Below, piece by piece: positions 480-42,071 of a stretch of 45,754 bases of DNA; position 1 is the stretch's first letter, and the number at the start of each line of letters is the position of its first letter. Made by a program: the position numbers and the translations under genes. Origin of the DNA: Octopus bimaculoides (taxonomy: Eukaryota). The DNA lies in contig NC_068987.1 in the NCBI RefSeq assembly GCF_001194135.2, positions 59,632,668 to 59,678,421 on the forward strand, given 5' to 3'. The notes beneath the pieces were generated by a model. That model was not told where the DNA came from. It saw only the letters and a program-made list of their open reading frames with translations, and ran no database searches.

Positions 480-1700
480 ATATTATTTAACAGTAAGGAT
501 TATAAAAGCCTCTTCTGTACACAAGTCACATCTCCTGTTTGAGATTCTATAAGAACTTGCAGAACAAATGATATCCTATCTCATTTTAAATTCAATGTTA
601 TCCTTTAAATCCCATATGAACTTACTTAATCCGGTGGAATTAATTTTTTGTCAATTTTTAAAACTCTGTAGATGGTTAGACACGCTGAGTTTAATCCTAT
701 TTTCGGTAGNNNNNNNNNNTTGCATAAGGAATAATTAACCAAATCGTACTAGGTTTATCAGAATTAATTTTAGATAATTTGTAATCGTTTTAAGATTTAG
801 TAGAGTTATGAGTAAATGATTTGTTTCTACTATTAAGAATATTGTATGGATTATCAATGGTGTTGTTATTCAAAGAAATTATTTGTTTATTCATATCATA
901 ACGTTTATTAATTATGGTTTTGCCACTATAAGAATAATTATAACTATTGAATGGTTGTTTATTAATCTTAGGTTTATAAGATAACTTGATATTGGATTTT
1001 ACTATATTGTGTTTACTATTTCGAGCTTGATTCATATTAATTATCATTATCACCCAGCGTTTTATTAATAAAAGAATTATTAATTTTATGTTTATTTTTA
1101 CTACTAGTTTTAGCTTTCATTGAATTACCAAACTTTTCAGTTTTGGTTCTTCCCTTATAATTAATTCTATCATATCTATTTATATCGTTTGGTCGATGGT
1201 ATTTTGTCTTTATATCCAGCCTTAGCTAGGGCCATGTTATAAAAATCTGTGTGTTTCATGAATATGTCTTCATTAGATGATATATATGTTTGTCTTTTCC
1301 CAATGTTGGAGACTAATGCGTTTTTAATTGATCTTGGATGATTACTTAGGAAATTAATGTAGCTTAAATTCGTATTTAATTTATGAAAAGGTTCGTGCTA
1401 ACCGGTTAGATTGAAATTAACATACAAAAAGTTAACTGAGTTATTATCTTTTTCAATAGATACGGAAAGTCCATGTCTCTTGAAAAATTTATAAAATCGT
1501 TTCTTAAATAATTCTAACTTTCTATTAGATGTATTCTTGATGACAAAAAGTGCATCATCCCTGTACAATTCCCCTCTAATTTCATTCATCATGCAGGTCA
1601 TACAAAAGGTAGATTCATAAATGACAGAGAAATAGTTTGATGAAATTTTATTTAACAATAAGAAAATTCTAATATCACAACAAATTGTTTCGTAACTTAA
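480..1700 (-). mobile_element. Penelope-like retroelement remnant: RT C-terminal half, linker and GIY-YIG endonuclease C-terminus
   Basis: The minus frame reads ELYRDDALF...FKRHGLSVSIEK..VNFLYVNFNL, then YINFLSNHPRSIKNALVSNIGKR...ALAKAGYKDK. After the linker comes TIWLIIPY (about 720-750), and after the gap SNHLQSFKN..STGLSKFIWDLKD..SYRISNRRCDLCTEE. These are Penelope RT and GIY-YIG motifs in the expected order, with stops. Confidence 0.85.
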
Positions 1701-3961: not shown

Positions 3962-4169
3962 AATTAGGCGGCGAGCTGGCAGAAACGCTAGCACGCCGGG
4001 CGAAATGCTTAGCGGTATTTCGTCTGTCTTTACGTTCTGAGTTCAAATTCCGCCGAGGTCGTCTTTGCTTTTCATCCTTTCGGATGAAGTACTAGTTGTG
4101 TACTGGGGTCAATGTAATCGACTGGACCCCTACCCCCAAATTTCGGGCCTTGTGCCTAGAGTAGAAAAG
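3962..4169 (+). mobile_element. SINE family A (tRNA-derived) with 12-bp TSD
   Basis: Head ggcggcgagctggcagaaacgctagc and B-box-like gagttcaaattcc. Perfect flanking direct repeat aatattcaactt at 3950-3961 and 4170-4181. Confidence 0.9.
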
Positions 4170-4684
4170 AATATTCAACTTTGCTAAATAGTAAGCAGTT
4201 TGATTCCTCATCGTCCAGTACCTTTCAACACATTAACAAACGCACGTACGAATACATAAAAGAATATTACATATACGTAACTACAGGTTAAAAATAATAA
4301 TAAATAATAATAATAATAATAATAACAATAATAATAATGATTTATTATTTAGCTGTAATTACTAGAGATTACAATTGGGTGAATTATAACAAATTTCTTA
4401 AGTGATTAAATACTTTACTGACATTTCGATCTATCATAATTAATAATGTAAATTAGGGATACTGTTTTAATTTATTGGTAAAGCAATCGTATTGAAATAT
4501 TGTTTATGCTAACAAACGGATACTTTCGTTTCTCAACGCATTACATGCACACGCGAACAAATACATAAACAAATTTGCATATACGTATACACAAATAACG
4601 GTTTTTAAAAAATACATTGGTTGCTGAAACGCACATATCTGAGTGTAACAAGAATCAAACAGCTCGTTGGAATGTAGCGCCTTT

Positions 4685-5089: not shown

Positions 5090-5290
5090 GTGTGTGTGTC
5101 TGTGTTTGTGCCCCCGCCACCGCTTGACAATCGATGCTGGTGTGTTTATGTCCCCGTAACTTAGCGGTTCGGCAAAAGATCACGATAGAATAAGTACAAG
5201 GCTTACAAATAGGTCTTGGGGTCGATTTCTTCGACTTTAAGGTGGTGCTCCAGCATGGCCACAGTCAAATGAATGAAGCAAGTAAAAGAA
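5090..5290 (+). mobile_element. SINE family B, 3' half
   Basis: cgcttgacaatcgatgctggtgtgttt...aacttagcggttcggcaaaag...gtgctccagcatggccacagtcaaatga...aagtaaaag matches the reverse complement of 26865-27050 and 23780-23950. Confidence 0.8.
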
Positions 5291-6196: not shown

Positions 6197-7709
6197 CGAG
6201 GGGTGTTCATTAAAGATTTCTCCTGACCTCCTTCCGGTCACTGAAGGAATCGAAACTTGTAAAGGTATAATCATACATGTCTCTACATGTCACATTGTAA
6301 ATTGCAGCTTTCCACTAATATTCATTTGTCTTTTATGGCTGCTGAAGTGGACTAAGGTGTTATAATGGATGCAGTTGAATGCAGATGAATAATCAGGTTC
6401 TTATACTCGAAAGGTCGTACACCAAAAGAGACTTTCGATGAAATGAAAGAAGTTTCTGGTGACGATGCACCATCACACGACGTAGTCAAGCACTGGCATT
6501 GCCAGTTCAAATGTGGTCCAACATCGGTGGAAACTGCTCCTATTCTTAGACGACAACATTCCGCCATTGATGACGACACCATTCATAAAGTGGAAGCCAC
6601 CATTTTGGAGGATCGCCACATAACTATTCAGAAACTAGTCCAAGAAGTGAAGATAAGTGTAGGGTCCGTGGAAAAAATCATTCACAACCATTTGCACATG
6701 CAGAAGTTGTTTGCACGATGGATTCCCCGGATGCTTACACCTTTTCAGAAGCAGGAACGAGTGAATTGCTCCCAGGCTCTTTTGGCAAGAAAACGAGGGA
6801 GGACCTTTTCTTATTTCTTTATTGCCCACAAGGGGCTAAACACAGAGGGGACAAACAAGGACAGACAAAGGGATTAAGTCGATTACGTCGACCACAGTGC
6901 GTAACTGGTACTTAATTTATCGATCCCGAAAAGATGGAAAGCAAAGTCGACCTCGGCGGAATTTGAACTCAGAACGTAACGGCTAAGCATTTCGCCCGGC
7001 GTGCTAACGCTTCTGCCAGCTCGCCGAGGGAAGACCTATTCTGAAGACTTATCACACAGGATGAAACATGGATCCATAACTATGACCTTGAGACTAAAGT
7101 CCAGTCGAAATAATGGAAACATTATAACTCACCACCTCCAAAGAAGGTTCGTGACCAACCCTCAGCAGGCAAGGTGATGCTCGCAGTGTTTTGGGACTAG
7201 CGCGGAGAAGGATGGATTTTCTGGCAAAGGGCATCACAATTAACGGGGCATATTATGCTTCTCTGCGGCAGAAATTGCAGGACGCCATCAAAGCAGAGAA
7301 GTATGGCATGCTGATCAAAGGAGTCCGCTTCCTCCAAAACAATGCCCCAGTTCACAATGCGCATGTTGCCCAAATGAAAGTACATTCCTGCGGCTATGAA
7401 ATCTTTCCTCATCCTCCTGGCTCTCCCGATCTCTCCTCATGTGACTTCCACCTCTTTCCAACCATGAAGTCTTTTTTGAAGGGGAAGCACTTTTCGGATC
7501 ATGATGAACTTAATTTTGAGGTAAAGTCTTGGCTCCAGGCACAACCTACCGACTTCTGCAGACGAGGTCATTACAACTGCATAAAGCAAGGGAAGAAGCG
7601 TGTCACCATTTATGGTGGCTATGTAGAGAAAGACTAATAATTAAGCCAAGTTTCGTTTATCTCTGTCGTTGGGAAGTGGGTTAGGGGAAATCCTTAATGA
7701 ACACTCGCG
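6197..7709 (+). mobile_element. Near full-length mariner (DD34D) DNA transposon with inactivated transposase
   Basis: TA at 6195-6196 and 7710-7711, with imperfect TIRs (cgaggggtgttcattaaagatttctcctgacc versus the reverse complement cgcgagtgttcattaaggatttcccctaacc). Motifs ARWIPRMLT, ITQDETW, FLQNNAPVH and HPPGSPDLSSCDFHLF are present. It has frameshifts and stops and is interrupted by a SINE. Confidence 0.95.
6811..7025 (-). mobile_element. SINE family A inserted in the mariner transposase, with 16-bp TSD and Tx1-like tail
   Basis: TSD gagggaggaccttttc (6795-6810) and gagggaagacctattc (7026-7041), with 2 mismatches. Same head and central domain as 3962-4169, but a different tail. Confidence 0.9.
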
Positions 7710-9748
7710 TATGTTTTGTTAACTTATGCATCACTTGATTAGCTCGTCATGGCATTTAAGCAATTAAAATCGTGTATTTTAGTTTATAAATTTGAATCGT
7801 CCGCGTGAGAAATATAACCAATAATTTAATATCTGCATAATTCTTTTAAAAAATTGATATTTAAGCTAATTTAGCCAAATCTCTCAATTGAAAACAACTG
7901 TTATAAGACTAATTTGTGTGTGTGTATGTGTGTTTGTACGCGCACGTAATAATCTGCTCTAGCAGGGTGTGACGTAAGCTAGTCTGTTTTATACCCTGAG
8001 TGTAGTTCAGTTTATAGCCGAATGTATAAACAAGCTAGCTCATATTATCCTCGGGCGGAGGCATACTCGTATTTCTGGCTGTTACATCAGGGACAGTGTG
8101 CATGAAAGTTGCGCCGTGAGAAAAATAGTTACTTGCTCGGACAAGTCGCGCGCGCGCACACTGATATAAAGCTAAATGTTTTCCATATCCTTACTATTGT
8201 TGACATAATTAACAATTGTCGTACATAATTCTTCCGGAATGTTCCGTATATTTTCGTTGAATTGTGATCTTGTCTCGTGTAACAATATATATATTAATAC
8301 ACTGTTCAACGTCTCATTGTATCAATCCTTTCTTGTCTTCCTGTCTTTAGTACACTATTCCCTAGTAGAATTATATTTAAATCTAGTGGTTCACTTGAAG
8401 CTAACGATCCTGACGTTAACCGTGCCGAAATTGCTACGAGCTTTAATCAACTGCTGTTGAAGGGAAACTTGAGTCATTATTTGTGATTTTCCATGTCCTA
8501 TTTGTTTGGCTTGTTCATTGCGGTTCTTTTTTTTTTATTATTTGGAGTATATTGGAACGTACATTTTGCAGCATATTATTATACATATTATCTCTTTGTG
8601 ACCATCTTTCTTTATTATTCGAACCTTCGTTCCCTTTTATATATTTATATATTAAATTTGACTACCCTTTATTACCCCTCGTTCTGGTTTTTCTTCGTTC
8701 CTTTCGTTCAAGGACCAATGATGGCAAAATAACTATAATTTCTTGAGCGTTACCGTCCTGTACGTTGTCCCCGCTTGCTGGACGCCATTTTGTCAGTGTT
8801 TGGTGTTAGATTTGGTTTGTTTTCTGAGATGTAAAGTGGTTTATCGAGTGTTGGTTAGTTGTTGAATATTAATTGCTAGAAATTGTAATGCTTTGGGATA
8901 GTAATCCACCCATATTCTTTAATACTAAAGACTATATAGTAGCACTGTCACCTCACCGCCAAGCTCATGCGGTTCTTTTTTTTTTGTCTCAGACAATAAT
9001 TAGTAGCATGTACAGTTTTGCCAATGAGAGAGTTTCCTTGCAATGAAATTTTCTGGCGACAGCATGGATAATGAAGTTAATCACCCTTAAATCATGGTAG
9101 ATAGAAATTTATTCTTTATAAAGGACTTAGAGGATTTCCTTTCTCCTTCATAGCTCGTTACAGGCATTGTCAAATATTGATACATTGTCAAAATTTTCTG
9201 GGTAATACGATCGCATACATTTAAGATTGCCTTCATTAATTTCACCCATACTGAAAGGCACTTGAAATTTTACTGGCCAAGTGCCTTACGTAAATGGATT
9301 ACAAAAAACTTCTATCCTAAACATGTCACCTCCTCTCGAAGAAACATTTTGGCATGTAAGGGTGACAACTCAAGGTATGTTTCACTCTTATTTTCAGGTA
9401 ATGTACAAAACGTCGTCGTCGTCGTACTTCACTTGGCCAAAGTAGTGATGAGACATGTCAAAGCAACGATTACAAAGTAAACAACTTGCAAGATTGCTTT
9501 GAACTTTAATTATTATTGAACTTTATTTGTCTAGCGATTGTTTTATTCTTTTACTCCTTTCATGATTCAGAAATACATTTATTCCTTGTCAAATATTTTA
9601 CAATTTACTTATTTACTTCTCTTTTCCTTTCTACTGAAAGTTAACTGTAATTTTACGATCGTAAATGATACAGTTTACCATAAAATTCTATTTATTAACT
9701 ACTAAATCGTATTTTCTATTAATTGCACATTCTGTACTGATCTGTCTG

Positions 9749-9806
<58 letters not shown>

Positions 9807-10229
9807 CCTTTGTCAGTCTGTCTATCGATCTCTGTACGTGTGTGTGTTTGTGTGTATATGTGTGTGCGTGTTTATATATATATATATATATATATNNNNN
9901 NNNNNNNNNNNNNNNNNNNNNNNNNNNNNNNNNNNNNNNNNNNNNNNNNNNNNNNNNNNNNNNNNNNNNNNNNNNNNNNNNNNNNNNNNNNNNNNNNNNN
10001 NNNNNNNNNNNNNNNNNNNNNNNNNNNNNNNNNNNNNNNNNNNNNNNNNNNNNNNNNNNNNNNNNNNNNNNNNNNNNNNNNNNNNNNNNNNNNNNNNNNN
10101 NNNNNNNNNNNNNNNNNNNNNNNNNNNNNNNNNNNNNNNNNNNNNNNNNNNNNNNNNNNNNNNNNNNNNNNNNNNNNNNNNNNNNNNNNNNNNNNNNNNN
10201 NNNNTATATATGTGTGTGTGTGTTATATG

Positions 10230-10520
10230 TCTTAGTAGTTAGAGTGTATTCTCACGATTGCGAGATCGTGGGTTCGATTCTCAGACCGGGCGTTGCGTTG
10301 TGTTCTTGAGCAAAGCAATTCATTTCACGTTGCTCTGCGATCATTTCGTCATCTGACATGTGGAACACGGAACACCTGTACAGGTAATGCTGATTTGATA
10401 GAGGGAGTGAGCTTATGTGTACACAAAAATTTGATCACTATAAGCAAATCAACTGCGTAGTTCTTCGTCAAGAAATTGCCGAACACTCACTCATACGACG
10501 TCTAACGACGGAAGAGTACA
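10230..10520 (+). mobile_element. tRNA-derived SINE (family E)
   Basis: B box gggttcgattctc, CORE-like gttgtgttcttgagcaaagc and tail cgacgtctaacgacggaagagt. Confidence 0.7.
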
Positions 10521-10958
10521 TATTATATATACACACATATATATAAACGTCTCTCTCCTCCTCTCTCTATATATGTATCTATGTGTCTATATATATATGT
10601 ATATACACGTACACACATTTGTGTATATAAATCTCTCTCTCTCTCTCTCTAGCTGGCCAACGACACACAGTCTGTGTCTGGTTAGCACAGGGAGGTCATC
10701 GCACTCATCTATAGCTTTACGTGATACATACATACATACATACATATATATATATNNNNNNNNNNNNNNNNNNNNNNNNNNNNNNNNNNNNNNNNNNNNN
10801 NNNNNNNNNNNNNNNNNNNNNNNNNNNNNNNNNNNNNNNNNNNNNNNNNNNNNNNNNNNNNNNNNNNNNNNNNNNNNNNNNNNNNNNNNNNNNNNNNNNN
10901 NNNNNNNNNNNNNNNNNNNNNNNNNNNNNNNNNNNNNNNNNNNNNNNNNNNNNNNNNN

Positions 10959-11000
<42 letters not shown>

Positions 11001-11749
11001 CTATATGTATATATAATATATTTATGTATATTAATATACATGTTTATGTATATTTATTTATGTTTGCATAGTATGTGTGCATATCTGCATGTATGTAAAT
11101 ATATAAAATAATATCAATTTTTGTATAAGCAGATGTATGTGAATACGTGTATCCGTGTTTGCACATTTTAGATTGCATCTATATGCATATTTTACGAACA
11201 TGTATCAATATGCTTAGACATTACAGTATTTATACAGTGTCTGTGTGTGTGTGTGTGTGTAGTGCATAAATCTATTTGTTTACGCGTGTACATACCTACA
11301 CGCACTTTGCTCTCTTTGTGTGTGAAAACGATACTTTCCTTGAGGGTGTATTTATTTTTCATATACATATTTTTTTATAAAACTTGTTTTGCTTTCACAA
11401 TAGCTTTCTGAACTTCATTAGTTTATATGAATTCAAGACATCATTGTCTCCAATACGGTTCTTACTCTGTAGTATTGTCTTTCTAAAAATAAAAAATAAA
11501 AAAAACAAAAAAACCCTGAAATGTGTCTTTCAAAAAGAATGGGAACTTACACTGCACAATCCTATTCTTTTCTACGTTAAAATATTGATTTGTTTTCAAT
11601 AGGAAATATTTAGTTGTGACATTTATTTATTATCTAAGAAATTTTGCGAAGTAACGGAAGTAAATTTGCTCCAGTATAACAATTTGAATCGAAATCACAC
11701 CACTATTTTCGTGGTACTTGTTACCTACATTTGTCAATAAAAAATATGC

Positions 11750-11850
11750 TCTTTTATCTTTCAGTCATTGAAATACGGTCGTGCTGCGGTAGCATCTTGA
11801 AGTGTTTAGTCGAATAAATCGACGCCAGTACTTATCTTCTTAAGTCTCGT
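11750..11850 (-). mobile_element. SINE family B, 3' fragment
   Basis: ttttatctttcagtcatt...gtcgtgctgcggtagca...tttagtcgaataaatcgacgccagtacttat resembles 26865-26960. Confidence 0.55.
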
Positions 11851-12009
11851 AATTATTCAGTCAGTGCCTCTTGCTGAATCACATCACTAAGTAACAGAGA
11901 CGTAAAAATATAAATCAACACCTGTTGCCAAACCGTGTGGTGTGAACGAAAACAAACACACGCGCGCGCGCACACACACACAAACATACATAATGTAATG
12001 AGATACGTC

Positions 12010-12500
12010 GAAAGGATGACCCCGAGAACAATAAGAAATAAGAACTCACAATATGGCAGAAGCCATACCAACTCATAAAAAGGAATTTTGGTGGAGTGTC
12101 TCAGTGAAAACCTCAGTAAAACGTAAACATATCAGGTCTATTGACCTGATATAATGATTTGGGACAGAGAAGAGAAACTGTGTACAGTTGTGGAAATCAG
12201 CCGCCCAGTGGATGTTAACATAAAGCTGAAGATCAGTGAAAATGAGAATACCTACTTTGAATTATTGAAGAATCTGCAGTTACTCTTTCCAGATTACAAG
12301 TTCAGGTTTATACCTGTAATTATTGGGGCACACGGATATATGAGACACTAACTAAATACCAATTTTGGGAAATTAGGCTTCTCAAAACCAGAATAGAAGA
12401 TGCTAATTCGAAGACTACAGATTCAAGCCATCACTGGAACTGTAAAAATCTGTAAAACTTTCCAGAAGTTTACCATTTAAGTATATATGAGCATATCTAG
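12010..12500 (+). mobile_element. RLE-type (R4/Dong-like) LINE, 3' fragment
   Basis: ..PDIMIWDREEKLCTVVEISRPVDVNIKLKISENENTYFELLKNLQ...FIPVIIGAHG...LQIQAITGTVKICK is a PD-(D/E)xK restriction-like endonuclease signature. Confidence 0.75.
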
Positions 12501-13921: not shown

Positions 13922-14131
13922 GAATAAAATTTCAAATTTTGGTACAAGGCCACCGATTTTGGGGGAGGAAATAAGTCGATCACATTCCTCATCTGGTACT
14001 TATTTAATCGACTCCAAAAGGACGAAAGGAAAAGTCGACCTCAGTGGAATTTGAACTCAGAACACAAAGACGGACGAAATGCTGTTAAACATTGTTTATC
14101 CGGCGTGCTAACGACTCCGCCAGCTCGGCGC
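13922..14131 (-). mobile_element. SINE family A, tail type ending ggccttgtaccaaaatttgaaa
   Basis: Reverse complement of the family A head (gagctggcggagtcgttagcacgccgg) and central domain (gaggtcgacttttcctttcgtccttttggagtcgattaaataagtaccag). Confidence 0.85.
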
Positions 14132-15966: not shown

Positions 15967-16325
15967 AAGGCGATGAGCTGACAAAATCGTTAACGCATCA
16001 AACAAAATGCTTCGCTGTATTCCTTCCGGCTCTTTACGTTCTGGATTCAAATACTGCTGTGCTCAACTTTGCTTTTCATCTTTTTGGGGTTCGATAAAAT
16101 AAAGTACCAGTCAAGTACTGAAGGGGCGGGTGTGTTGATGCTATCGACTTGCGCCCTTCATCCAAAATTGCTAGTTTTGTACTTATATTGGTTTCAAATC
16201 TTGGTACAAAGCCAGTAATTTCAACTCCAGTGCTTAACTGGTACTTATTTTATCGACCTCAAAAGAATGAAAGGCAAAGTCGACCTCGGCTTAAACTTAT
16301 CTTAAAGTAATATTAGAAAGAATTA
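15967..16325 (+). mobile_element. SINE family A with an inverted family A 3' fragment inserted in its tail
   Basis: Head aaggcgatgagctgacaaaatcgtt, then tail gttttgtacttatatt...agaaagaattatt split by a minus-strand fragment at about 16190-16290 (ggtacttattttatcgacc...ggcaaagtcgacctcggc). Confidence 0.7.
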
Positions 16326-16968: not shown

Positions 16969-17522
16969 GAGTGAGAGAGCAGTGCATGCCATCAAAGTGA
17001 TACTGGGGTAAAATATGCGAAGCCCATTATACCCATCATGACTACCAGTCTGATAAGGGTACACCAGGCACATGCATCACAACCATATGTGCGCAACATG
17101 GTGATCTTATATCAAGATAAACAGCGCATGACCTCGCAGGTGGGGCCTAGTTAGCATTTTCTTCAGGTCGAGTATCCCATCCCGCTCAAAACGTCCCTGA
17201 ATAAGGTCTGTTTAAGGATGTTAAGCAAAACACCCATGTTTCCAAAGGTGAATTATCCAAACCTCAAAGAATTCCTCTCAACACATGTCTATGATGCTCC
17301 CTCACTACTTCTGCTCATGATCAGAGATGCACATATCGTCAGCCCCCAAGGGACATGCTCAACTGGCTAAGGTCAAACAACTGACAAGCAAATCTGTGGT
17401 ATTAAGCAGAATATTTGCTGTAGCCCATCTTTTATACCAAGACAAAACAATGTACATGATAACACTCCCAATCAATTAAGATCAGAAGCCAGGAGAGCCA
17501 CTGCCCGGTACTGTATCCGGGC

Positions 17523-17527: not shown

Positions 17528-17607
<80 letters not shown>
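17525..17607. repeat. (TTA)n microsatellite
   Basis: Direct reading. Confidence 0.98.
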
Positions 17608-17609
<2 letters not shown>

Positions 17610-17820
17610 GGTGGCGAGCTGGTAGAATCGTTAAGCACGCCGGGCGAAATGCTTAGCGGTATTTCGTCTGTCTACGATCTGAATTCAAATTCCTCCGAGG
17701 TCGACTTTGCCTTTCATCCTTTCGGAGTCGATAAGTTAAGTACCAGTTGCGTACTGGGGTCGGTCTAATCGATTGGCCGCTTCCCACCATATTTCAGGCC
17801 TTATGCCTATAGTAGAAAAT
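17608..17820 (+). mobile_element. SINE family A between TTA tracts
   Basis: aaggtggcgagctggtagaatcgttaagcacgccgggcg...gaggtcgactttgcctttcatcctttcggagtcgataagttaagtaccag...ggccttatgcctatagtagaaa(att)n. Confidence 0.9.
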
Positions 17821-17834
17821 ATTATTATTATTAT

Positions 17835-18350
17835 TTTATGAAACTTACAGCTTATTTTGCTGGGTATGATGGAAAGTGTCAGCTGTCCACAGCCAGCAGA
17901 CTAAGGTGCCACTTGTTTACTGGTCATGCTTCAAGAACCATGCGAAGAATTCTTGCAGCTCCAAGCAATGCTGATTTTTGGAGGTGTTCTATCTTCACAG
18001 CTGTACCAATATTTTTCATCTATGTTGGTAGTTGAGTGCTGATACTTCCAAGTGCACCAATTACTGTTGGCATCACATCTACTCTCTCCATTGGCAACAA
18101 ACTTCGTATTTCCTACTTCAAATCGTCATAGTTGTTTATTTTCTTCTTCTATCATACTGATGATGTTGTGACCGGGGCATGCTATGTCGATTATCACACA
18201 TGTTCTTTCTTTTTTATTTACCACAACAATATCCGGTTTCCGATGTCTGGTTGGGTGATCGCACTGGATCATTACATCCTCAAGATTTTGCAGCTCTTAT
18301 TTTCGGTGACGACTTCTGGAGTTTGCTCATACCACATCTTTGCTCTTTGT
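17835..18350 (-). mobile_element. RLE-type (R4/Dong-like) LINE, 3' fragment
   Basis: Frameshifted minus translation: WYEQTPEVVTENKSCKIL...IQCDHPTRHRKPDIVVV..KERTCVIIDIACPG..., ending in ...cataaa(ata)n. Confidence 0.85.
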
Positions 18351-19253
18351 AGGACGTGAATTCCACAGAGCTTCCAATGGATCATTCTTGCCACATTGTC
18401 ATGGCATCTTTTGTATTCTCATTGTACCAATTTCGGGCATTCGCTAACGATACGCCAGCAAAGCGTGGAGGCTGTCTCGGACTATATAATCCTACCGGAT
18501 GGCACAAAACTTCATGTTGCTATCGAGGGCAGAAATCCAAGATGTCACCTGTGCGGTGACACAGACTATCTAAAGGCCTGTTCGGGGTAAACTCCAAAGG
18601 CACGAAGTGTAGTCAGCCGGGCTTGCCCGAGATGCGCGCGGAGCGACGAAACAGTTCTGCACGCTCTCGTCCAGTGCCCAAGTATTTCTGACTTGTGGGT
18701 TTATGTCGAACACCTACTGTCGCGTGTGGGACGGATTCGGCTATCGGCTGAATCCATTGTGAAGATAGTCCCACCGTCTTCCTTTGGCCGGGAAGGGCAG
18801 GCTGTGTTTCTTTACCTGATAGCCTTGGCAAAAGAGGTTGTGTAGTGGACCAGACTGAAAGGGCTGAAGACAGACACTTTCCTCTTTGGCCAAGTCTTCA
18901 TCAGCTCTTTCAAGTTTCACTTGAAAAGGAAAGTGAGGATAGAGAGGGAAGTTCTGCCTCTCAGCAATTTTGTTAAAAGGTGGATGAATATCGCAAGAAT
19001 GGCCCGTGTGAATGGCCCTGCTCTGAGCATGCACCTGTAGACAAAGTGGAGAGGGTGCTTGCCCTGGTGGTCAGGACTGTTGTGGATTTGCGGGGTTTAC
19101 ACGAGCAGTCCTAGGAAGTCTCTCACTTTTGGGGAATTTTGTTGTTATAATCGATTGTTTTTCATTGTTTACACGACTTTCATGTAACCCTACATTCTAT
19201 CTGTCCTGTGCTTTCCACAATGTTTTTAAATGTAAACCCTATGTGGTTAATAA

Positions 19254-19255
<2 letters not shown>
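18350..19255 (+). mobile_element. Internally deleted Tx1-type LINE: ORF1 zinc knuckle joined to ORF2 C-terminus and 3' UTR
   Basis: LHVAIEGRNPRCHLCGDTDYLKAC (compare LNVTVEGRRPRCYQCGQ in ORF1 at 33.9 kb) is followed directly by ACPRCARSDETVLHALVQCPSISDLW...FKFHLKRKVRIERE...RWMN. The latter is homologous to 35323-35660. The copy ends aataaa(ata)n. Confidence 0.85.
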
Positions 19256-19337
<82 letters not shown>

Positions 19338-19340
19338 ATT
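19250..19340. repeat. Compound (TAA)n(TGA)n microsatellite
   Basis: Direct reading. Confidence 0.98.
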
Positions 19341-19341
19341 G

Positions 19342-20597
19342 TAGCTGGATGACATTCTACACAGAGAAATGAAAGTCTAGGTCAGTGGGGTGTATCAGAA
19401 AAGGGTGAAAATGGTGTTGAAATCCAACTTGAATGCTTGGCAGTTGCGGTAGTGAGATATAGTGCGTCCATTCTGAAATGGACTAAGGAGGAAATATCAA
19501 CACTGGATAGAGGGACGAGAAAGTTGGTGACGTTGCATGGGTCGCTACACTCTAAAGCAAACGTAAACAGACTGTATATGAAAAGAAAGAATGGTGGCAG
19601 AAGACTAATTAGTATAGACCATTGTATAACGAGTGAAAGGAGAATGTGGGCCGAGTATTTTATAAATAGTGGCGAAGACCTGCTGCAATATGCCACGAAC
19701 GATATAGGTGTAAATGCAGATGAAATGATGGTCAAGGAAGAGTTTAACTAAAGAGCTGAGGAGAAGAGAAAAGAAGACCTTAAAATGAGAATGCTTGGAC
19801 ACTTTTGAAAGGAATACACAAGACGTCATGGTTATGGCTTGAACGAGGTCATTTGAAGCGTACCACCGAAAGCCTGATCATTGCTGCACAAGCCCAGGCT
19901 CCTGCTACCAATTTAGCGAAGTATAACATCTATAAAACTTCTGACACCCAGAAATGCTAACTCTGAGGAAAGAGTGTTGAAAATGTGACCCACTTGGTAA
20001 ATGGATGTGAGATCCTTGCAAAAAAAGAATACAAACGCCGCCACGATAAAGTGTGTATCTTCATTGGCTTCTATGCTGTAAATACCAATATGAAGTTGGT
20101 ATGAGCATGTACCAAGTAAAATTATGCAGGAGGATGGAAAAGTAACGATACTCTGGGACTATGATTTTCAGACGGATCGTGTAATCGAACGCTGTCGGCC
20201 GGATATTGTCATTGTGGATAAGAGAGACAAATACTGTCAGATCATTGATGTAGCTATACCAAATGACATGAATGTTGTGAGCAAAGAAGTTGAAAAAATC
20301 ACCAAGTACTCGGAATTGAAAGTGGAAATAGCAAGACTGTATCGAATGCGAGAGGGTAATGTGAAAGTGTTACAAGTGGTGATCGCAGGTGTTGGGCTCA
20401 AATCCCATTGAAGCTTCAAGACATCTTAAGACAACTGGAAATCCCATGCAAGATTGTTGTTTTGCAGAAATCAGATTTATTGGGCACAGGGCACATCTTA
20501 AGGAAAGTATTATCTGTCTTAGGTCCTTGTTGTGATTTGACAGATGACTAAAGACTCCGGTGCATTTTTACCTATACTGTGTTACGAAGGAATAATA
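19342..20597 (+). mobile_element. RLE-type (R4/Dong-like) LINE, 3' portion (RT thumb, CCHC, RLE)
   Basis: AVAVVRYSASILKWTKEEISTLDRGTRK...RLYMKRKNGGRRL; ENVTHLVNGCEILAKKEYKRRHDKV; LWDYDFQTDRVIERCRPDIVIVDK...IIDVAIP...EKITKYSELK. Confidence 0.9.
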
Positions 20598-20689: not shown

Positions 20690-21915
20690 CCTGACATATT
20701 TATGATTATCTCAAGTACAAGACAAAAGTCAAAACTAAACAACATTTAAGTGAGGAAGATCAGAAGGTTTTAGATGAGTTGCAGAAAGTAATGAGTAAAG
20801 AAGTAAGACATCAACAGAAGGAAGCTACAAAAAATGACTAGGGAAGTAGATTCTGTTATCAGGAGAATAGATACTAAAAATATAGAAGACACTAACTTAT
20901 TGATCTATGTAGGAGGGGTAGTAGTCACCAGAAGATTAGATATCTCACAAGGAAAGATTAAAAAAGAGCGAAAGGAGACTACAAAATAAAGTGAAGACCT
21001 TAAGACAAGATCCGAGTAGAAAAGAAACCTGGAAGCTGAACAAGTTAGGAAACACAATATGCAAATCTTCCTCCGAGAAAAGATATTTAGTCAAAGAGAA
21101 AGGGTTGTGGATAGTAATAGAAGAGTTGAAACAGCATAGCAGTAGCAGGAAAGCACTCCAGATATCAGAAAAGAATAGTTCAGTATCAAGAGAATAGATT
21201 ATTTGAGACAGACCAGAGGCGATTTTATAACCAAATAAATAGTGGAGAACGAAGTACTAAAGATGAGAAACCTAATGCAGAGGAAGCTAGACAGTTCTGG
21301 AGTAATATTTGGGATAAACCAATCAATAATAATGGAGATATATTATGGTTAAAGAAAATGAGGGAAGAAGTAGTGAGTGAGAAGCAGCCAGATCTAAGAT
21401 CAATTAGTGCATTAATGAATAAAGTGTTAGGAAAAATGCCGAATTGGAAGGGCCCAGGAACAAATTTAGTTCAAGGGTACTGGCTTAAGAAATTCAGTAG
21501 TTTACATGGGAGGCTGAGGGAACAACTTCAGGATTGCCTTAGTGGAGGAATAATATCAGATTGGATGACTAGAGGGAGAACACAACTCATTATCAAGGAT
21601 AAGAGCAAGGGTAATACAGCTAGCAACTATAGATCAATCACTTACTTACCATTAGTGTGGAAGATGTTAACAGGAATGCTTTCAGAAAGCACTTAAGAGC
21701 ACTTTGGCAACCAGAATTTACTACCAGAACAGAAAGGTTGCAGGAAGATGGCTAGTGGAACGCATGATCTATTATATACAGACAAAGCAGTTATAAATGA
21801 AGTAAAAGCTAGAAAGAAAAATCTAACAATAGCTTGGATAGATTACAGGAAAGCCTATGACATGATCCCACACTCATGGATAAGTGAATGTTTGAGTATG
21901 TTCTGTATAGCAGGC
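20690..21915 (+). mobile_element. RLE-type (R4/Dong-like) LINE, N-terminal region and first RT domains
   Basis: NRLFETDQRRFY...FWSNIWDKP...KMPNWKGPG...GYWLKKF...NYRSITYLPLVWKMLTG...EQKGCRK...AWIDYRKAYDMIPHSWISECL. Confidence 0.9.
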
Positions 21916-21941
21916 AACATGAGAAAATCAGTAAATGCAGA

Positions 21942-22796
21942 CAACATAAGAAAATCAGTAAATGCAGAGAAGTATTGTCATCAATTGAAAGCGGTGCACA
22001 AAGTGTTGCGGGAAAAAAAACGCCCATCATTGGTCAAAAGGCGTAGCGTTCTTGCACAATAAAACAAGACCACAATTGCCCAAGTCACCCAGTAAAAAAT
22101 CATTGCATTAAATGCTGAAATTTTCCTTTATTTTCCTTACTGCCCTGACCTTACACCATCTGACTACCATCTTCTCAGATCATTGCAACATTATCTAGAA
22201 GGAAAAAAGTTTATTAATCTTGAAGAGGTGAAAAACAATATGGGATATTTCTTTGCTTCTAAACCTAAAGAATTTTATGCCCAACCAATCAACAATTTGC
22301 TTAATAGATAGGATCACCTAATTGACATTATCTTGATCAAACCCGTGGCACTGCGTCGGTTACGACGACATGGGTCCCAGTTGATCCAATCAACGGAACA
22401 GCCTTCCCGTGAAATTAACGTGTAAGTGGCTGAGCAATCCACAGACACGTGTACCCTTAATGTGGTTCTCTGGGAGATTCAGCATGACACAGAGTGTGAC
22501 AAGCATGGCGTTTTGAAATACAGGTACAACAGAAACAGGAAGAAAGAGTGAGAGAAAGTTGTGGTGAAAGAGTACAGCAGGGTTCACCACCATCCTTACC
22601 GGAGCCTCGTGGAGCTTTTAGGTGTTTTCGCTCAATAAACATTCACAACGTCCGGTCTGGGAATCGAAACCGCGATCCTACGACCGCTGCCCTAACCACT
22701 GGGCCATTGCGCCTCCACATCTTTATCAAATATATTAAGACCAAAGAAGCATTTTTTCACCTTGATTTGCGACAGAACGTTTTTTGCAACATAATA
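21942..22796 (+). mobile_element. Mariner 3' fragment interrupted by a SINE
   Basis: NAEKYCHQL...KRPSLVKRRSVL...PYCPDLTPSDYHLLRSLQHYLEGKKF. A TIR-like end (ttttttgcaacataata) lies at about 22780-22796. Confidence 0.75.
22346..22717 (-). mobile_element. SINE family D (tRNA-derived)
   Basis: Minus head tggaggcgcaatggcccagtggttagggc (A box) and ggtttcgattccc (B box). Approximate TSD atcttgatcaaa (22330-22341) and atctttatcaaa (22719-22730). Close relative of 28440-28821. Confidence 0.9.
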
Positions 22797-23769
22797 TTTT
22801 ACTTAACAACAAGGGATGTTGAGGGGAAAATAACTTAAGAGAAACCAAAACTAAATTATTCTTTCCAATAGAGATAGTAAGTTGCTTATATCTAGGCCAG
22901 CTCTCATCGCGCAAGCATATTAGATGGTAACTTAATAGAAACGGCAGTGCGCCGGATTAAATTTCGTGTAGGTATGGTATTCTGTGTGCTGAGTTAGAAT
23001 CTAGCTTCTATCGATGCAGTCATTCACTAAACTGGAGAGTCCAACAAAATAAATAAATATCAGCGACACACTGGAATCCCAATTCTCAGTAATGCTAACG
23101 AGTCGATTCAATTGACTATTTCTCTGTCACCAGAAAATAGCTTTTTAATTTGTCAAAATAAATCAATTTATTCGTTTAAACGACTGTTAGTTTAGCTATT
23201 AATCTTCAAAGATTTAAAAGAAATAAAATACGATATAGCAAGATATAGTGTTTCGCTTAAAAAAAAGTATGTATCCAATAGCAATTAAAAAGACGTGATG
23301 TCATTTTTCGATCAACTATAACCAAAATTTATTTAAAATTAAAAATCTTAATTTCCCATTAAATTAATTTGGGATTCTGCTCACTTATATTAAGATAATT
23401 TTTTTTAGAAGAAACACGTAGTCAAAGAATTAATTCTGAAATTTAAGAAAAAAAAAAAAAGGAAAATCGATTCATTGAAATATTAGGTGACCTATATATA
23501 CAACTTTTCTCCTTAAAAGTCAGTTAGTTTCTGCAGTAATTGCAGTTTATAATAAGTGTTAATTAGAAAAGGAAGATGATATTTTTCTTGAAATTACTTA
23601 AGGCAACGTAAATTGTTTTCTTTGACAAAGCAAATACACTACTGTGTTGTAAAGAAGAGAATGAAACAAAAAGTTGTGACAGTCATGCCTTTCCAGTAAT
23701 GGAAATGATATTGCGGCTTCGATTCAGTAGAAATATATCTCTTTTATAATTTATTTTATCCTTTTTCAT

Positions 23770-24150
23770 TTATATTGTACATGTTTTCAGTCATTGGATT
23801 ACGGCTATGCTGTTTTGAAGGGTGTAGTTGAACAAATAGAACCCAGTACTTATGTCTTTAAAGTCTGGTACTTATTTTATCAGTCTTTTTGCCGACCCGC
23901 TAAGTTACGGGACATAAACAAACCAACACCGGTTGTCAAGTGATGGCAGGTGGACAAGTACAAAAGCACACACACACACACATACATACATACATACATA
24001 TATACGACGAGTTTCCACACAGTTTCTGTCTACCAAACTAACTCACAAAACATTGGCCGATCCGGAGCTACAGTAGAAGACACTTCCTCTTCAGTGGGAC
24101 TGAACCCGAAACCAAGTGGGTTGCAAAGTGAGTTTCTTAGCTATACAACC
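23770..24150 (-). mobile_element. SINE family B, full bipartite copy with internal microsatellite
   Basis: The head half (24000-24150), (CA)/(TACA)n spacer and tail half (23770-23960) lie in colinear order. Confidence 0.75.
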
Positions 24151-25714
24151 ATTCCGCCATTCCTGCACTTCAAAACATGCTGGTAATGTGTAGTTTAAAT
24201 AGAATTATATAATACAATTTGACTGAGTGTTAGCGCCATTAAACAAGCCATTGTTTCTTTGAAAACTTTACAGTGAGTAATAAACACATTCGTACTAATT
24301 GACGAATAACCGAACAGAGAGCGTGTGCTAATGGACTACTACGTGACAGATGGTTATTTGTTGTCATGTGATATAATTTAGTTCGCTTCGCAGTTCATCA
24401 TTATATTGCTCTGCTTAAATGGATGTCACACAGAGATTATTTTAAGCAGCAAATATGTATGATAATTGCTCGTTTATGTTAACGAAATTTACAAATTTGT
24501 AGGTGAAAGGAATAAAATTGTAGCAACATTTATGTTTACCTCAAGTATATTAATGTAGACGGACAGGAGAAATGAAATGATTTCGATCGGGAATCGAAAC
24601 AAGTCTACAATTTCTGTTCACTGGAGGTGTATCTCTTCTAATCTCGTGCATTATATACTCTTACTTTTTTCTTTTATTGTTTTAGCCTTTGGAATGCTTT
24701 TATGTTGGAGCCTCTGGAAGTGTTTTGGTCAATTATATTGATCCTTATACTCGTTTATTCATACAAACGTAACTGAGATGAAATATGTCATAAATAACAG
24801 TGACAGACGAAATATACACTGCCGGAAGTTGTTGTCGACAAACAATAGCAGTAATTTTATTCAGCTCAATCGACGTCATTGGTTGGTTGAAATTACCGAA
24901 ATACGACAACTTTAACACGAAATAGCTTCGAAAATACAGAATTTTCTCAACAACGCCAAGAGTAAAAGATGTTTTATGTGACACATTCTACCAGTATAGG
25001 AAGTTTGAAAGTGTTTAGTAACAAAAAATTAATTTTTCGATCTGCCAGTCAAAAGGCAAAGATCCTTAGACGTTATTAATTTTCTAGCTTTCAGTAGAAA
25101 TGTTTTGTAATGCATGNNNNNNNNNNNNNNNNNNNNNNNNNNNNNNNNNNNNNNNNNNNNNNNNNNNNNNNNNNNNNNNNNNNNNNNNNNNNNNNNNNNN
25201 NNNNNNNNNNNNNNNNNNNNNNNNNNNNNNNNNNNNNNNNNNNNNNNNNNNNNNNNNNNNNNNNNNNNNNNNNNNNNNNNNNNNNNNNNNNNNNNNNNNN
25301 NNNNNNNNNNNNNNNNNNNNNNNNNNNNNNNNNNNNNNNNNNNNNNNNNNNNNNNNNNNNNNNNNNNNNNNNNNNNNNNNNNNNNNNNNNNNNNNNNNNN
25401 NNNNNNNNNNNNNNNNNNNNNNNNNNNNNNNNNNNNNNNNNNNNNNNTTCAGGATAATAAACTAAAGTGAAAACAATATTTAAAATTTGGTTATTACGTG
25501 CTAAATTTTAGAAATTATACTTTTATTAAATATTTCTAATTTTTTCAAAAGTGACCTGTTTCTACCTATGACCGTTTATTAAAAAAACTGAATTACTTTT
25601 TCACTAACATTGTCTCAGAGGTCTATTGAAAAAGTAAAGATTCCAAAGGGAGTCACAACTCCCCCCACCAAAAAAAAAGCAAAAAAAAAACAAAAAAAAA
25701 CACAAAAACACTTT

Positions 25715-26100
25715 TGCAGCCACGTGGTTTCGGGTTCATTCCCATTGTGTGACACCCCGGAAAAGTGTCTCCTACTATTGCGCCAGGTCGATTAATGCCT
25801 TATGAGTGAATTTGTTAGATGGAAACTGTGTGGAAGCCTGTTAGATATATATATGTGTATATATATGTGTGTGTATGTGCACCTATGTATGTTCTTGTGT
25901 GGCTTATCGTTTGCTTTTGTGACACACTCCTAATCTGTTTGACAAGCAGTGCTGATTAAGCGGTCTAGCAATAGTGAACGATAGAATACTAAACTAAAAG
26001 AAAAAAAAAAAGAAATAACAAACAAAAACTAAAATACAGAAGTCGATTATTTCGACTACAACCCATTAAGACGGTACCCTAGTGGCTGAAACAAGTTAAG
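25715..26100 (+). mobile_element. SINE family B, degenerate full copy
   Basis: ccacgtggtttcgggttcattcccattgtgtg...ctactattgc...gatggaaactg, then a TA/TG tract, then decayed tail ...gctgaaacaagttaagg. Confidence 0.65.
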
Positions 26101-26289
26101 GATAAACCACAGGGGGAAAAATGAAAGGCAAGAAGAATACTTGGAATTAAAGGAGATTACGCGATCGAAACTAAACGCATGGTCTTTTTTCATGATACAC
26201 CGATTTTTGTCCAGCCTACATACATACATGCATACATGACAGTCATTCGCACACATTTATATGCATATATATACATATATCTATTTATC

Positions 26290-26440: not shown

Positions 26441-26864
26441 GAGTGTATTACTTTAATCAACAGCAAAATTAGATCACAGATGGCTGAATCGATAGAGTAC
26501 AAAAAGAAACAAAAGAAAAAACAAAAGATAAAAAGACAAAAAATCACAAAAAGAAACAAAAAAAAAGCTGAAATATAGGTAATTCGGATCTGGTTAATAG
26601 TATTAATATGAATGACCAAGCCTTTACTTTCCAACAGCTGTCCACGTATTTCTAAGCTGGTACTGTAAGGTAGTCAAAAAGGTAGCCAAATTCTGTAAGC
26701 AGCGACAACACTGTAACATTTACGAGTGTTTACTTTGATCATAGCGCGGGATTTATTTTCCTCTGTGAAGGAAAAGTACGTTCTTTATATGAATTTGGGT
26801 TTGGAATTGGCTGAGTAACTCACTCCCATAAAATTTTCTTTGCTACGTAATGCAATATCTTTTA

Positions 26865-27053
26865 TCTTTCACTTGTTTCAGTCGCGAGACTGCGGACTGC
26901 GGCCATGCTGGAGCACAGCGTTGAAGAATTGTTTTAGTCGAATGTATCGACTCGAGTACTTATTTTTTAAAGCCTGGTACTTATTCTATCGGTCTCTTTT
27001 GCAAAACACACAAACACTGGTTGTCAAGTGGTGATGGGGGAACAGACACAAAG

Positions 27054-31486: not shown

Positions 31487-31556
<70 letters not shown>
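31487..31556. repeat. (CA)n microsatellite
   Basis: Direct reading. Confidence 0.98.
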
Positions 31557-31609
31557 TTATGTGAGTAGTGACTTCTGAAGAAAAGGAAGTAGATCAAGAG
31601 GAACATCAA

Positions 31610-34600: not shown

Positions 34601-35040
34601 TATTGCGACGCTAACAGCGTCCATTAGCTGAATTTCCTTGCTCTTTTCCTCTCCTTTCTCGCGTTTCTTTTCTTCTTTTTCCTTCTGTTGTTCAGCGTTG
34701 CACGTGCTAGCAAGACTTTGGTCGTCTCACTCTCTGCCTTTTAAAGTGCAGAGAGGGCGGAGACAATTAATTTTGAAACTCTTTTGTCTGTTTTCCGACA
34801 GCAGAGGGGAGAAGTCAGAAAGAAAGGAAGAGCTGACACTCTCCAAGGACATTTTGCAAAATTTAAAATTGAAAAATGGTGAGGTCCCACCTAACCACTC
34901 ACCTCAGCAAGAGTCCAGTCGGCCTAGCCACAGAAATGTAAAAGAATTTCAGATAGAACAACATTATCTATAAAAATCGAACATAAACTTACAGCTCAAA
35001 AACACACGTCCTTCCTCTTTGAAATCCACGAGCCTTATTC
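31610..35040 (-). mobile_element. Tx1-type (L1-clade) LINE: 5' region, ORF1, APE endonuclease and RT; internally deleted and 3'-truncated
   Basis: ORF1 with knuckle EGRRPRCYQCGQ; EN GIDVIAITESRL...LVAVYAPTG...GDFNAILD...GYADHKSL; RT NFRPITLLSADMKILAK...LDQSNAFDRIDH...VLQGCPLSS...SAYADEIT; post-RT LLGIWFGPD...HPMNGGLGMP. Confidence 0.92.
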
Positions 35041-35665
35041 AATAATAATAATAATAATAATTAATTCTGGTTTATTGGCCACAAGAGCTAATATAAAATC
35101 AAAAACATGTAAGGACAAACACAGGACGATAAAAACAAAGGGTTTTGCAAAAAGAAAGGTCCGTGTAAACATTAAATAACAGCGAAAATATAACAAAATA
35201 TAACAAGTAAAAACTCCCAATACAGGGAGGCGCTTTGAAAGGTTATTCGTGGAAAACCCATAAAAGCCATGGGAGCCTATTCAAACGAGGATAGAGCCCC
35301 TTCTCCTTTTATATTCCTTTTTTTACAGGTGTAATCTCAGAATTGGTCCGTTCATACTGGCCATTTTACCGACATTCATCCACCTTTCAGCAAGTTTGCT
35401 ACGAGACAGCACTTCCCTCTCTACCCTCACCTTCCTTTTCAAGTGGAACTTGAAAAAGTTGATGAGGCCTTGGCCATAGAGGAAAGAGTCTGACTTTATC
35501 TCTTTCAAACGGGTCCGCCATACCACCTTTCTCGCTACAGCCACCAGACAAATAAAAATTGCCTTGCCCTCCCGGTTAAAGGAGGTCGGCGGGAGAATCT
35601 TCACTATGAATTCAGCTGATAGCCGGATCCGTCCTACACGCGACAGTAGCTGTTCGACATAAATT
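35041..35665 (-). mobile_element. 5'-truncated Tx1-type LINE 3' end with 3' UTR and (TAA)n tail
   Basis: ORF 35323-35604 ...ARKVVWRTRLK...FKFHLKRKVRVERE...ERWMNV. The UTR ends cttgtggccaataaa followed by (TAA)n. Confidence 0.88.
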
Positions 35666-35760
35666 TCAATAATAATAGTAACGAATTGGGGATGTGTATG
35701 ACATATGATACAGGGACACTAGGGAAATATGTCGTGTGACCACATGTGATACACAGGCAG

Positions 35761-39029: not shown

Positions 39030-39246
39030 ATTAATATTGATTTCTCACATAGGCAAAATGCCAGAAAATTTATGGGAGATGAGTGTAAGCAAATGAATCG
39101 ATCACACTACGTGACCGGTACTGTATCTACTTTTCGAGCCCGGAAGAATGAAAGGCAAAGTTGACAATGATTTGAAATTCGTACGTAGAGCAATGTAAAT
39201 AAGACATTTAATTCGGCGTTCTACCACTTCCGCCAACTCATTGCTC
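39030..39246 (-). mobile_element. Degenerate SINE family A
   Basis: Minus strand gagttggcggaagtggtagaacgccg...caactttgcctttcattcttccgggctcgaaaag...taccggtcac. Confidence 0.6.
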
Positions 39247-41629: not shown

Positions 41630-42071
41630 CGATATATGTATATATGATGTATATGTTATATATTTATAAGATGTATATGCATACGTATATGATATATACA
41701 TATATGTATATACATATGTATATCATGTTAGTGTTAGCGAGCGTGGTTGCGCGAGCGTCCATGTGTGTGTTATAAGTTTATGGTGAAACAAATATAACGA
41801 TAGGGAAGTCTTAAATTGTTAACTTGCATGTTCTTCGCCAATCTGGTATGCAAGAGATAGACGTTAAATAGTGAACCAGATATGTATACATACATGCATT
41901 CATATATATATATATACACACACATAAATATATATATATATATATANNNNNNNNNNNNNNNNNNNNNNNNNNNNNNNNNNNNNNNNNNNNNNNNNNNNNN
42001 NNNNNNNNNNNNNNNNNNNNNNNNNNNNNNNNNNNNNNNNNNNNNNNNNNNNNNNNNNNNNNNNNNNNNNN

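Follow-up and report, generated by a model that had tools for sequence, protein, structure and literature searches.

A SINE subfamily of Octopus bimaculoides whose 3' tail is homologous to the ends of L1-superfamily LINEs

Stringent pairs of short and long interspersed elements (SINEs and LINEs) were reportedly described by Ohshima and Okada and by Kajikawa and Okada in 2002, and Ohshima and Okada are said to have described the tRNA-derived octopus SINEs OK, OR1 and OR2 in 1994. Here we analyse a stretch of 45,754 nucleotides of the Octopus bimaculoides genome (assembly GCF_001194135.2, contig NC_068987.1, positions 59,632,668 to 59,678,421, forward strand), called the window below, in which one SINE copy, S1, carries a 3' tail that is homologous to the 3' ends of LINEs in the same window. 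These LINEs belong to the L1 superfamily and plausibly to its Tx1 clade.

A shared tail is the hallmark of stringent SINE/LINE pairs, which occur in the CR1, L2, RTE and other clades, with UnaSINE1 and UnaL2 of eel as an example (PMC4824008, PMC3472496). The octopus pair resembles these in that the SINE is composite, its terminal tens of nucleotides run colinear with a LINE 3' untranslated region (UTR) and end together with it, tails are exchanged among subfamilies with a common head and body, and a small stem-loop is predicted near the end. It differs in that the LINE is of the L1 superfamily, with apurinic-type endonuclease (APE), reverse transcriptase (RT) and zf-RVT domains in the second open reading frame (ORF2) and a CCHC motif in ORF1, in that the hairpin is very short, and in being known from sequence alone. 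Within the L1 clade, tail pairs were reported for maize and sorghum SINEs with LINE1-1_ZM and for SINEX-3_CR with L1-1_CR of Chlamydomonas; such L1-tailed SINEs are rare, with 3 of 58 pairs against more than 800 L1-clade LINE entries (Ohshima, 2012; PMC3472496). Like these plant and algal pairs, the octopus case joins an L1-superfamily LINE and a SINE with about 45-80 nt of 3' end in common, but the host is an animal, the LINE probably belongs to the Tx1 branch, and its tails end in AT-rich trinucleotide repeats, unlike the poly(A) ends of the plant and algal elements. A Tx1-clade LINE was proposed as a SINE driver before, as Tx1-Mar was suggested to mobilise crocodilian SINEU on the basis of their common insertion into one Mariner family (Kojima, 2015; PMC4494074); that study identified no LINE with the 3' end of SINEU-1, and SINEU ends in poly(A) (PMC4494074). 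The octopus LINE is likewise a proposed driver, probably of Tx1 type, and S1 also lies in a mariner element, apparently by coincidence; here, however, the case is built on a shared tail, and the insertions showed no target in common. The framing of the original prediction as a possible novelty was too strong, since the L1-clade pairs (PMC3472496) and the proposal of a Tx1-driven SINEU (PMC4494074) precede it.

For bivalves, SINE partners were reported from CR1, CR1-Zenon, L2 and Nimb (PMC11481361, PMC4824008, PMC4758252). Octopus SINEs are annotated as tRNA-Deu and tRNA-Core in recent repeat libraries (PMC8967140, PMC13282606), and SINEs make up about 11.6% of the Octopus vulgaris genome in published annotations. 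The SINE studied here can be likened to the octopus tRNA-derived SINEs by description only, as it is an abundant composite SINE in a SINE-rich genome with a B-box-like motif GAGTTCAAATTCC and a conserved central core. In the published literature searched, we found no assignment of LINE partners to octopus or other cephalopod SINEs, and no description of this SINE-LINE tail pair. The tail sharing is real and fairly ordinary in type, but it lies in an under-represented clade and taxon.

S1 and its insertion site comprise the following features, numbered by position in the window.

6806-7024, minus strand: SINE copy S1, 219 bp, reading from 7024 to 6806, with head, core and LINE-like tail
6806-6877, minus strand: LINE-derived tail of S1, TTAATCCCTTTGTCTGTCCTTGTTTGTCCCCTCTGTGTTTAGCCCCTTGTGGGCAATAAA plus the A-rich end, beginning directly after the body motif AATCGACT
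7025-7036, minus strand: 5' target-site duplication of S1, GGTCTTCCCTCG, 12 bp
6794-6805, minus strand: 3' target-site duplication of S1, GGTCCTCCCTCG, 12 bp, with one mismatch to the 5' copy
6389-7634, plus strand: mariner (Mos1-type) transposase remnant split by S1, with an HTH_48 match (6.7e-6) and a weak Transposase_1 match

S1 is a SINE in that it is short and non-coding, is flanked by target-site duplications and has dispersed copies in the window and on unrelated contigs. It had been predicted at 6811-7025; the element is present, and its true extent is a little longer. All sequence strings that had been cited for the SINE and LINE tails were located in the window. The head, which lacks 16 nt found in the other window copies, contains motifs resembling the A and B boxes of RNA polymerase III promoters (TGGCAGAA.. 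and the B-box-like motif given above). ARAGORN and Rfam (E up to 10) returned no tRNA match for the head with S1, S3 and L009 (two further copies, see below) as queries, and a tRNA origin is unconfirmed here. The conserved core reads ..GATAAATTAAGTACCAG.. and the 3' terminus is A-rich (AATAAAGAAATAAGAAAA).

Three pieces of related LINEs lie in the same window, two of which retain a 3' end.

35052-35665, minus strand: LINE B, 5'-truncated, with the last ~115 ORF2 codons and the 3' UTR
35071-35146, minus strand: terminal block of LINE B, colinear with the SINE tail
35666-35678 (5') and 35039-35051 (3'), minus strand: target-site duplication of LINE B, TATTATTATTGAA, 13 bp, copies identical
18440-19254, plus strand: LINE A, internally deleted, with the end of ORF1 joined to the zf-RVT C-terminus of ORF2 and the 3' UTR
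19183-19254, plus strand: terminal block of LINE A, colinear with the SINE tail
31490-34330, minus strand: LINE C, with ORF1 (CCHC knuckle), APE and RT, cut on its 3' side by a (TG)n tract and without a tail

LINE B ends in ..TTAGCTCTTGTGGCCAATAAACCAGAATTA(ATT)n, without poly(A), and its target-site duplication TATTATTATTGAA shows microhomology to this (ATT)n end. LINE A ends at 19254 (plus strand) in ..CCCTATGTGGTTAATAAA, followed by (AAT)n(GAT)n. Its ORF1 end, with the CCHC knuckle ..VAIEGRNPRCHLCG.. at about 18470-18585, is fused directly to the last ~150 ORF2 codons; LINE A is possibly a non-autonomous LINE derivative. The two elements are 79% identical over ~600 nt, which cover the last ~115-150 ORF2 codons and the 3' UTR, and 50-60% identical in the 3' UTRs alone.

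To compare the tails, the 58-nt S1 tail was aligned locally with 2113 overlapping segments of 120 nt, on both strands and with S1 masked. The LINE B terminus scored highest (131) and the LINE A terminus second (116); no other segment scored above 96, and the mean was 46 (standard deviation 12). When the tail was shuffled 300 times with its dinucleotides preserved, the maximum over the window averaged 96 (standard deviation 6.4) and never exceeded 114, so that none of the 300 shuffles reached either observed score. Against the LINE tails alone, the scores lay 5.8 and 4.9 standard deviations above the shuffles. Global alignment of the S1 tail gave 49 matches, 9 mismatches and 19 gap columns with LINE B, and 48 matches, 11 mismatches and 13 gap columns with LINE A. 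Both matches have the same strand sense as the SINE tail, are colinear with it and end together with it at the same AATAAA. The tail type of the other SINE copies (the major type, see below), used as a control, failed to align with the LINE tails. Behind the two LINE termini, the regions of the window most similar to the tail (9741-9890, 26035-26200, 17275-17440 and 34601-34770) are rich in TG/CT and were rejected as chance matches. In the masked window, the best hit of an nhmmer profile of the S1-type tails was LINE B (E 0.017), with LINE A next (E 0.17-0.25); LINE B was also the best hit of a profile built from copies outside the window only (E 0.17). The match is convincing despite modest E-values: this LINE family has just two 3' termini in the window, and precisely these two come out on top, in the right strand sense and with the same AATAAA. 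Thus, the predicted homology of the SINE tail to LINE 3' ends, and the colinear and terminal position of the shared blocks, were both borne out, and the similarity exceeds that of the shuffled controls, at or below which it was to be discounted.

Self-BLAST of S1 revealed 6 further copies or fragments, which brings the total to 7 in ~45 kb.

3969-4175, plus strand: SINE copy S2, major tail type (..CCCCCAAATTTCGGGCCTTGTGCCTAGAGTAGAAAAG), with S1-like head and body
17610-17835, plus strand: SINE copy S3, major tail type, within an (ATT)n tract
13940-14127, minus strand: SINE copy S4, major tail type, from the self-BLAST match
15975-16180, plus strand: SINE copy S5, diverged, major tail type, from the self-BLAST match
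about 39040-39240, minus strand: SINE copy S6, diverged, major tail type, from the self-BLAST match
16228-16290, minus strand: SINE fragment, from the self-BLAST match

The window copies have in common the head with its B-box-like motif, the core ..GTCGATAAA(T/A)TAAGTACCAG.. and the body up to ..AATCGACT. Exactly after this motif the tail switches, the 6 other copies continuing with the major type ..CCCCCAAATTTCRGGCCTTGTGCCTAKAGTAGAAAA; S1 alone (1 of 7) has the LINE-like tail. No LINE partner for the major-type tail was found within the window. S2 is flanked by a 12-bp target-site duplication, AATATTCAACTT. S5 and the fragment at 16228-16290 lie in inverted orientation ~50 bp apart, as a potential hairpin-forming pair.

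Copies outside the window were found by an exhaustive HMMER search with the 48-residue antisense peptide of S1 (window positions 6840-6983, plus strand). Its matches were spurious open reading frames called over SINE copies in public assemblies, the contigs of which were then examined. Two of the matches (P0050, P0053) include the stretch GQTRTDKxIK, which the S1-type tail encodes, and three (P0051, P0052, P0054) have the version of the major-type tail. Contig L009 (ENA ERZ23499442) holds a full SINE with 88% identity to S1 (188 matches, 25 mismatches), whose tail TTAATCTGTTTGTCTGTCCTTGTTTGTCCCATCTATGTTTAGCCTCTTGTGGGTAATAAC.. is identical to that of S1 at 53 of 60 positions (88%); this copy is nested in a major-type SINE and its flanks are unlike those of S1. 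A more diverged copy in L010/L011 (Logan SRR11869391 and SRR11869385) kept the first ~40 nt of the tail. L012 (Logan SRR11869384) contains two adjacent S1-type copies, one with the full end ..TCTATGTTTAGCTTATTGTGGGTAATAAAGAAATAAATAAAAA and the other with a proximal S1-type tail followed by a poly(A) end, ..CCCCTGGTAGAAAAAAAAA. These two copies (880-1223, minus strand) stand head to tail, and the second, with the full S1-type end, is 5'-truncated; the pair points to tails of hybrid or intermediate form. S1, L009 and L012b all keep the last 25 nt, which include the hairpin described below and the AATAAA, and a profile of the external tails only recovers S1 at E 6e-14. The LINE-like tail therefore marks a SINE subfamily and not a single copy, if in a small sample, and the possibility that it occurs in S1 only, which had been named as a reason to abandon the proposal, is contradicted by independent copies with different flanks in L009, L010/L011 and L012. 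A pattern of the SINE body with 22 fixed bases had no match in viral contigs or in JGI metagenome contigs, a word-indexed protein search with the antisense SINE peptide gave no match, and the ORF2 C-terminus had no relative in JGI metagenomes. Searches with the LINE proteins retrieved only short ENA and Logan contigs and one distant relative that is not from octopus.

The LINEs could be classified from their linked pieces, as no intact element lies in the window. LINE C matches the Pfam families Exo_endo_phos (9e-10; APE) and RVT_1 (3e-24; RT), and among solved structures its RT is nearest to human L1 ORF2p (3e-21, against 6e-12 for R2). The C-termini of LINE A and LINE B contain the zf-RVT CCHC motif (Pfam). 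That these pieces represent one group is concluded from several findings. Between the ORF1 remnant of LINE A and the end of the LINE C ORF1, identity is 47% (E 1e-12). In P0004/L013, the RT-end motifs of LINE C ..GPVKLLG(V/I)WFGPDLQ(I/L)EKNW.. and ..CCQ.P..GGLG.PWLLM stand upstream of a zf-RVT C-terminus like that of LINE A and B. The 458-kb ENA contig L002 contains, at 8834-12141 (plus strand), a nearly full-length distant relative with the order APE-RT-GGLG-zf-RVT in one element. Lastly, the 3' UTR of a related LINE in L004, from another assembly, ends in ..GAGCCCTTGTTACTAATAATATAA and has partly kept the terminal motif. Together, the pieces have the APE, RT and CCHC zf-RVT domains of an L1-superfamily ORF2, and membership of this superfamily, as predicted from the start, is well supported. 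The L002 relative indicates that the LINE group is also present in another eukaryote; no SINE copy was found in that contig.

Assignment to the Tx1 clade is plausible, on the basis of ORF1 and of published octopus annotations. Both LINE C and the ORF1 remnant of LINE A contain the CCHC knuckle ..EGRRPRCYQCG.., which makes this a Type I ORF1, the type with an RRM, a CCHC knuckle or both, and Pfam returned no Transposase_22 match. A CCHC-type ORF1 in non-mammalian animals is consistent with Tx1, but plant L1s have the same ORF1 type, so that it is not exclusive to Tx1 (PMC5203782). In octopus repeat annotations, L1-Tx1 is the sole L1-like group, beside RTE, Dong-R4 and CR1 (PMC13282606, PMC8967140). 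The original prediction also proposed comparing target-site duplications and target preference of SINE and LINE. The duplications are of similar length, 12 bp for S1 and S2 and 13 bp for LINE B, but no common target was apparent: the host sequence is a mariner for S1, another SINE for the L009 copy and an ATT-rich site for LINE B. Many Tx1 members, though not all, insert at specific sequences. A shared specific target in mariner, as for Tx1-Mar, is not supported; the location of S1 looks like coincidence, because the other copies are not in mariner. AT-rich trinucleotide repeats, (ATT)n, (AAT)n or (GTT)n, contain or adjoin several of the LINE and SINE insertions, at 35039-35051, 35666-35678, 17560-17612, 17815-17835 and 19255-19340, in L009 at about 395-415 and in L004 at 860-900.

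Close to the end of the SINE and LINE tails a small hairpin is predicted.

6821-6833, minus strand: predicted mini-hairpin of S1, GCCC-CUUGU-GGGC, directly 5' of AAUAAA
L009: predicted hairpin GCCU-CUUGU-GGGU
L012b: predicted hairpin GCUU-AUUGU-GGGU
LINE B: predicted hairpin GCU-CUUGU-GGC
LINE A: predicted hairpin AACC-CUAUGU-GGUU
Major-type SINE tails: predicted hairpins GGGC-CUUGU-GCCU and AGGC-CUUAU-GCCU, and in S6 UGGC-AUUUU-GCC, with the same loop and the arms swapped
4141-4158, 17792-17809, 13935-13952 and 39046-39066: hairpin sites of the major-type tails, before the A-rich end

Over an alignment of 10 sequences, 85% of the cells pair, compared with 60% in shuffles, and 0 of 500 shuffles attained 85%; when the 3' partners are slid by 1-3 columns, 20-48% are paired. 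All 4 pairs vary on both sides. A search for a conserved stem-loop in the shared tail, as the original prediction had advised, thus yielded a small covarying hairpin in SINE and LINE tails; the tails as a whole are predicted to fold no more stably than shuffles. We regard the YUUGU-loop hairpin as a lead, short of a demonstration. The same loop in both tail types hints that the partner of the major SINE subfamily may be a related LINE.

The reading that we consider moderately probable is that S1 represents a subfamily of an abundant composite SINE with a conserved AAGTACCAG core, that its last ~60-75 nt come from an L1-superfamily LINE of probably the Tx1 clade, and that it is mobilised in trans by this LINE. 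A likely course of events would start with a LINE RT that begins on its own 3' UTR and switches template to the SINE RNA at ..AATCGACT, creating a master SINE with a new tail. The ORF2 protein would then recognise the shared block, that is the YUUGU-loop hairpin, the AAUAAA and the A- or AU-rich end, on SINE transcripts, and the SINE would be inserted by target-primed reverse transcription, leaving target-site duplications of 12-13 bp. Template switching followed by trans-mobilisation fits the tail exchange at a fixed junction, the existence of a subfamily, the 12-13-bp duplications and the (ATT)n microhomology of LINE B. The direction from LINE to SINE is suggested because the block ends LINE A, LINE B and partly the L004 element, whose UTRs otherwise diverge (50-60% alike), so that the block would be ancestral to the LINEs. 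For stringent recognition of the tail by the ORF2 protein, the similar lengths of the duplications and the covariation of the hairpin are indirect hints. A further-reaching proposal, in which an animal L1/Tx1 lineage with stringent recognition based on the hairpin (YUUGU loop and AAUAAA) drove much of the octopus SINE expansion by way of two arm-swapped tails, appears doubtful, since it is built on a 4-bp stem and a handful of sequences.

Several observations weigh against trans-mobilisation by specific recognition of the tail. For an L1-like enzyme, an A-rich end such as that of the SINE might be enough. The nhmmer E-values of the LINE tails are modest (0.017-0.25), LINE A is absent from the hits of the external-copy profile up to E 10, and none of the LINE tails compared is nearly identical (>90%) to the SINE tail, in a comparison limited to 4-5 S1-type copies and 3 LINE tails. 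Between LINE A and LINE B, conservation in the terminal block does not exceed that of the remaining 3' UTR. As for the hairpin, its stem of 3-4 bp was derived from the very sequences tested, most of its covariation goes back to the single swap of arms that distinguishes the two tail types, L004 and several decayed copies lack it, and the folding energies of the tails are no better than those of shuffles (z -0.5 to -1.6).

Part of this evidence would be explained if the tail were LINE-derived but a passenger, with a relaxed L1-like enzyme, or the LINE of the major subfamily, acting on the A-rich end of the SINE and without specific recognition. The AATAAAGAAATAAGAAAA end of S1 and the poly(A) end of the L012 copy with a proximal S1-type tail would agree with this, as would the unremarkable conservation of the LINE terminal block and stability of the folds, and L1-clade elements are mostly of the relaxed type (PMC3472496). 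However, the LINE copies themselves end without poly(A), LINE B in (ATT)n and LINE A in (AAT)n; the last 25 nt with hairpin and AATAAA are retained in S1, L009 and L012b; the hairpin arms covary; and retrocopies made by a relaxed enzyme are not expected to keep a LINE-derived block across a subfamily. We regard a passenger tail as possible but on the unlikely side. It seems improbable that the true partner is a LINE of another clade, such as CR1 or Dong-R4, with a closer tail, and that LINE A and LINE B share only an old or recombined block with the SINE. In its favour, the tail and LINE B agree at only about 84% of aligned positions and differ by several indels, further LINE clades including CR1 and Dong-R4 are active in octopus (PMC13282606), the major SINE tail has a similar hairpin without an assigned partner, and several insertions at AT-rich trinucleotide repeats are reminiscent of elements that target (TAA)n. 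Yet the tail has no match in any other LINE fragment of the window or of the fetched loci, and the block stands at the very end of three related L1-type LINEs.

A chance likeness of low-complexity sequences rich in T, G and C is very improbable. Composition does contribute, since shuffled tails score 65-70 on average against the LINE tails, where average segments of the window score 46; moreover, blastn alone gives E about 1 and other TG-rich regions reach 96. Against chance, 0 of 300 shuffles attained the observed scores, the best 2 of 2113 segments are both LINE 3' termini in the same orientation and with the same AATAAA, and the major SINE tail does not align. The remaining alternative, a single chimeric retrocopy made of a SINE 5' part and the 3' end of a LINE that did not propagate, could draw on the presence of the tail in 1 of 7 window copies and on the private 16-nt head deletion of S1. 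ENA and Logan assemblies, however, show this junction and tail at further loci whose flanks differ, which essentially excludes it.

The window contains further repeats. A second repeat family, at about 5100-5290, 23700-23960 and 26800-27040, has a ..GATAGAATAAGTACCAG.. core in common and differs in the remainder; it adjoins a (CA)n/(TG)n tract and probably represents a further SINE family built around that conserved central domain. A LINE fragment at 20094-20408 (plus strand) shows the motif CRPDIVIVDK..IIDVAIP of a restriction-enzyme-like endonuclease, which was read by eye and has no Pfam match. Downstream of it, an RT fragment at 21130-22308 (plus strand; RVT_1 5e-5) is interrupted by a mariner piece, and both fragments represent a LINE group other than that of LINE A, B and C. 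The window is part of a gapped draft scaffold, with 9 runs of N that total 2424 bases (710-719, 1846-2161, 9896-10204, 10756-10958, 25117-25447, 32897-32906, 37995-38670, 41947-42071 and 43561-44004), and several of the listed open reading frames of at least 150 residues are artefacts of these runs.

Should the partnership be purely historical and the tail a passenger, the locus would be a routine example of SINE tail exchange. An L1/Tx1 tail pair, if true, would name the likely driver of at least one octopus SINE subfamily and offer, in the terminal block and its small hairpin, a concrete pair of sequences for a retrotransposition assay. The very short list of L1-superfamily elements that seemingly need a specific 3' end would also gain an animal member, which would bear on the question whether the relaxed poly(A) recognition of mammalian L1 is a derived state (Ohshima, 2012).

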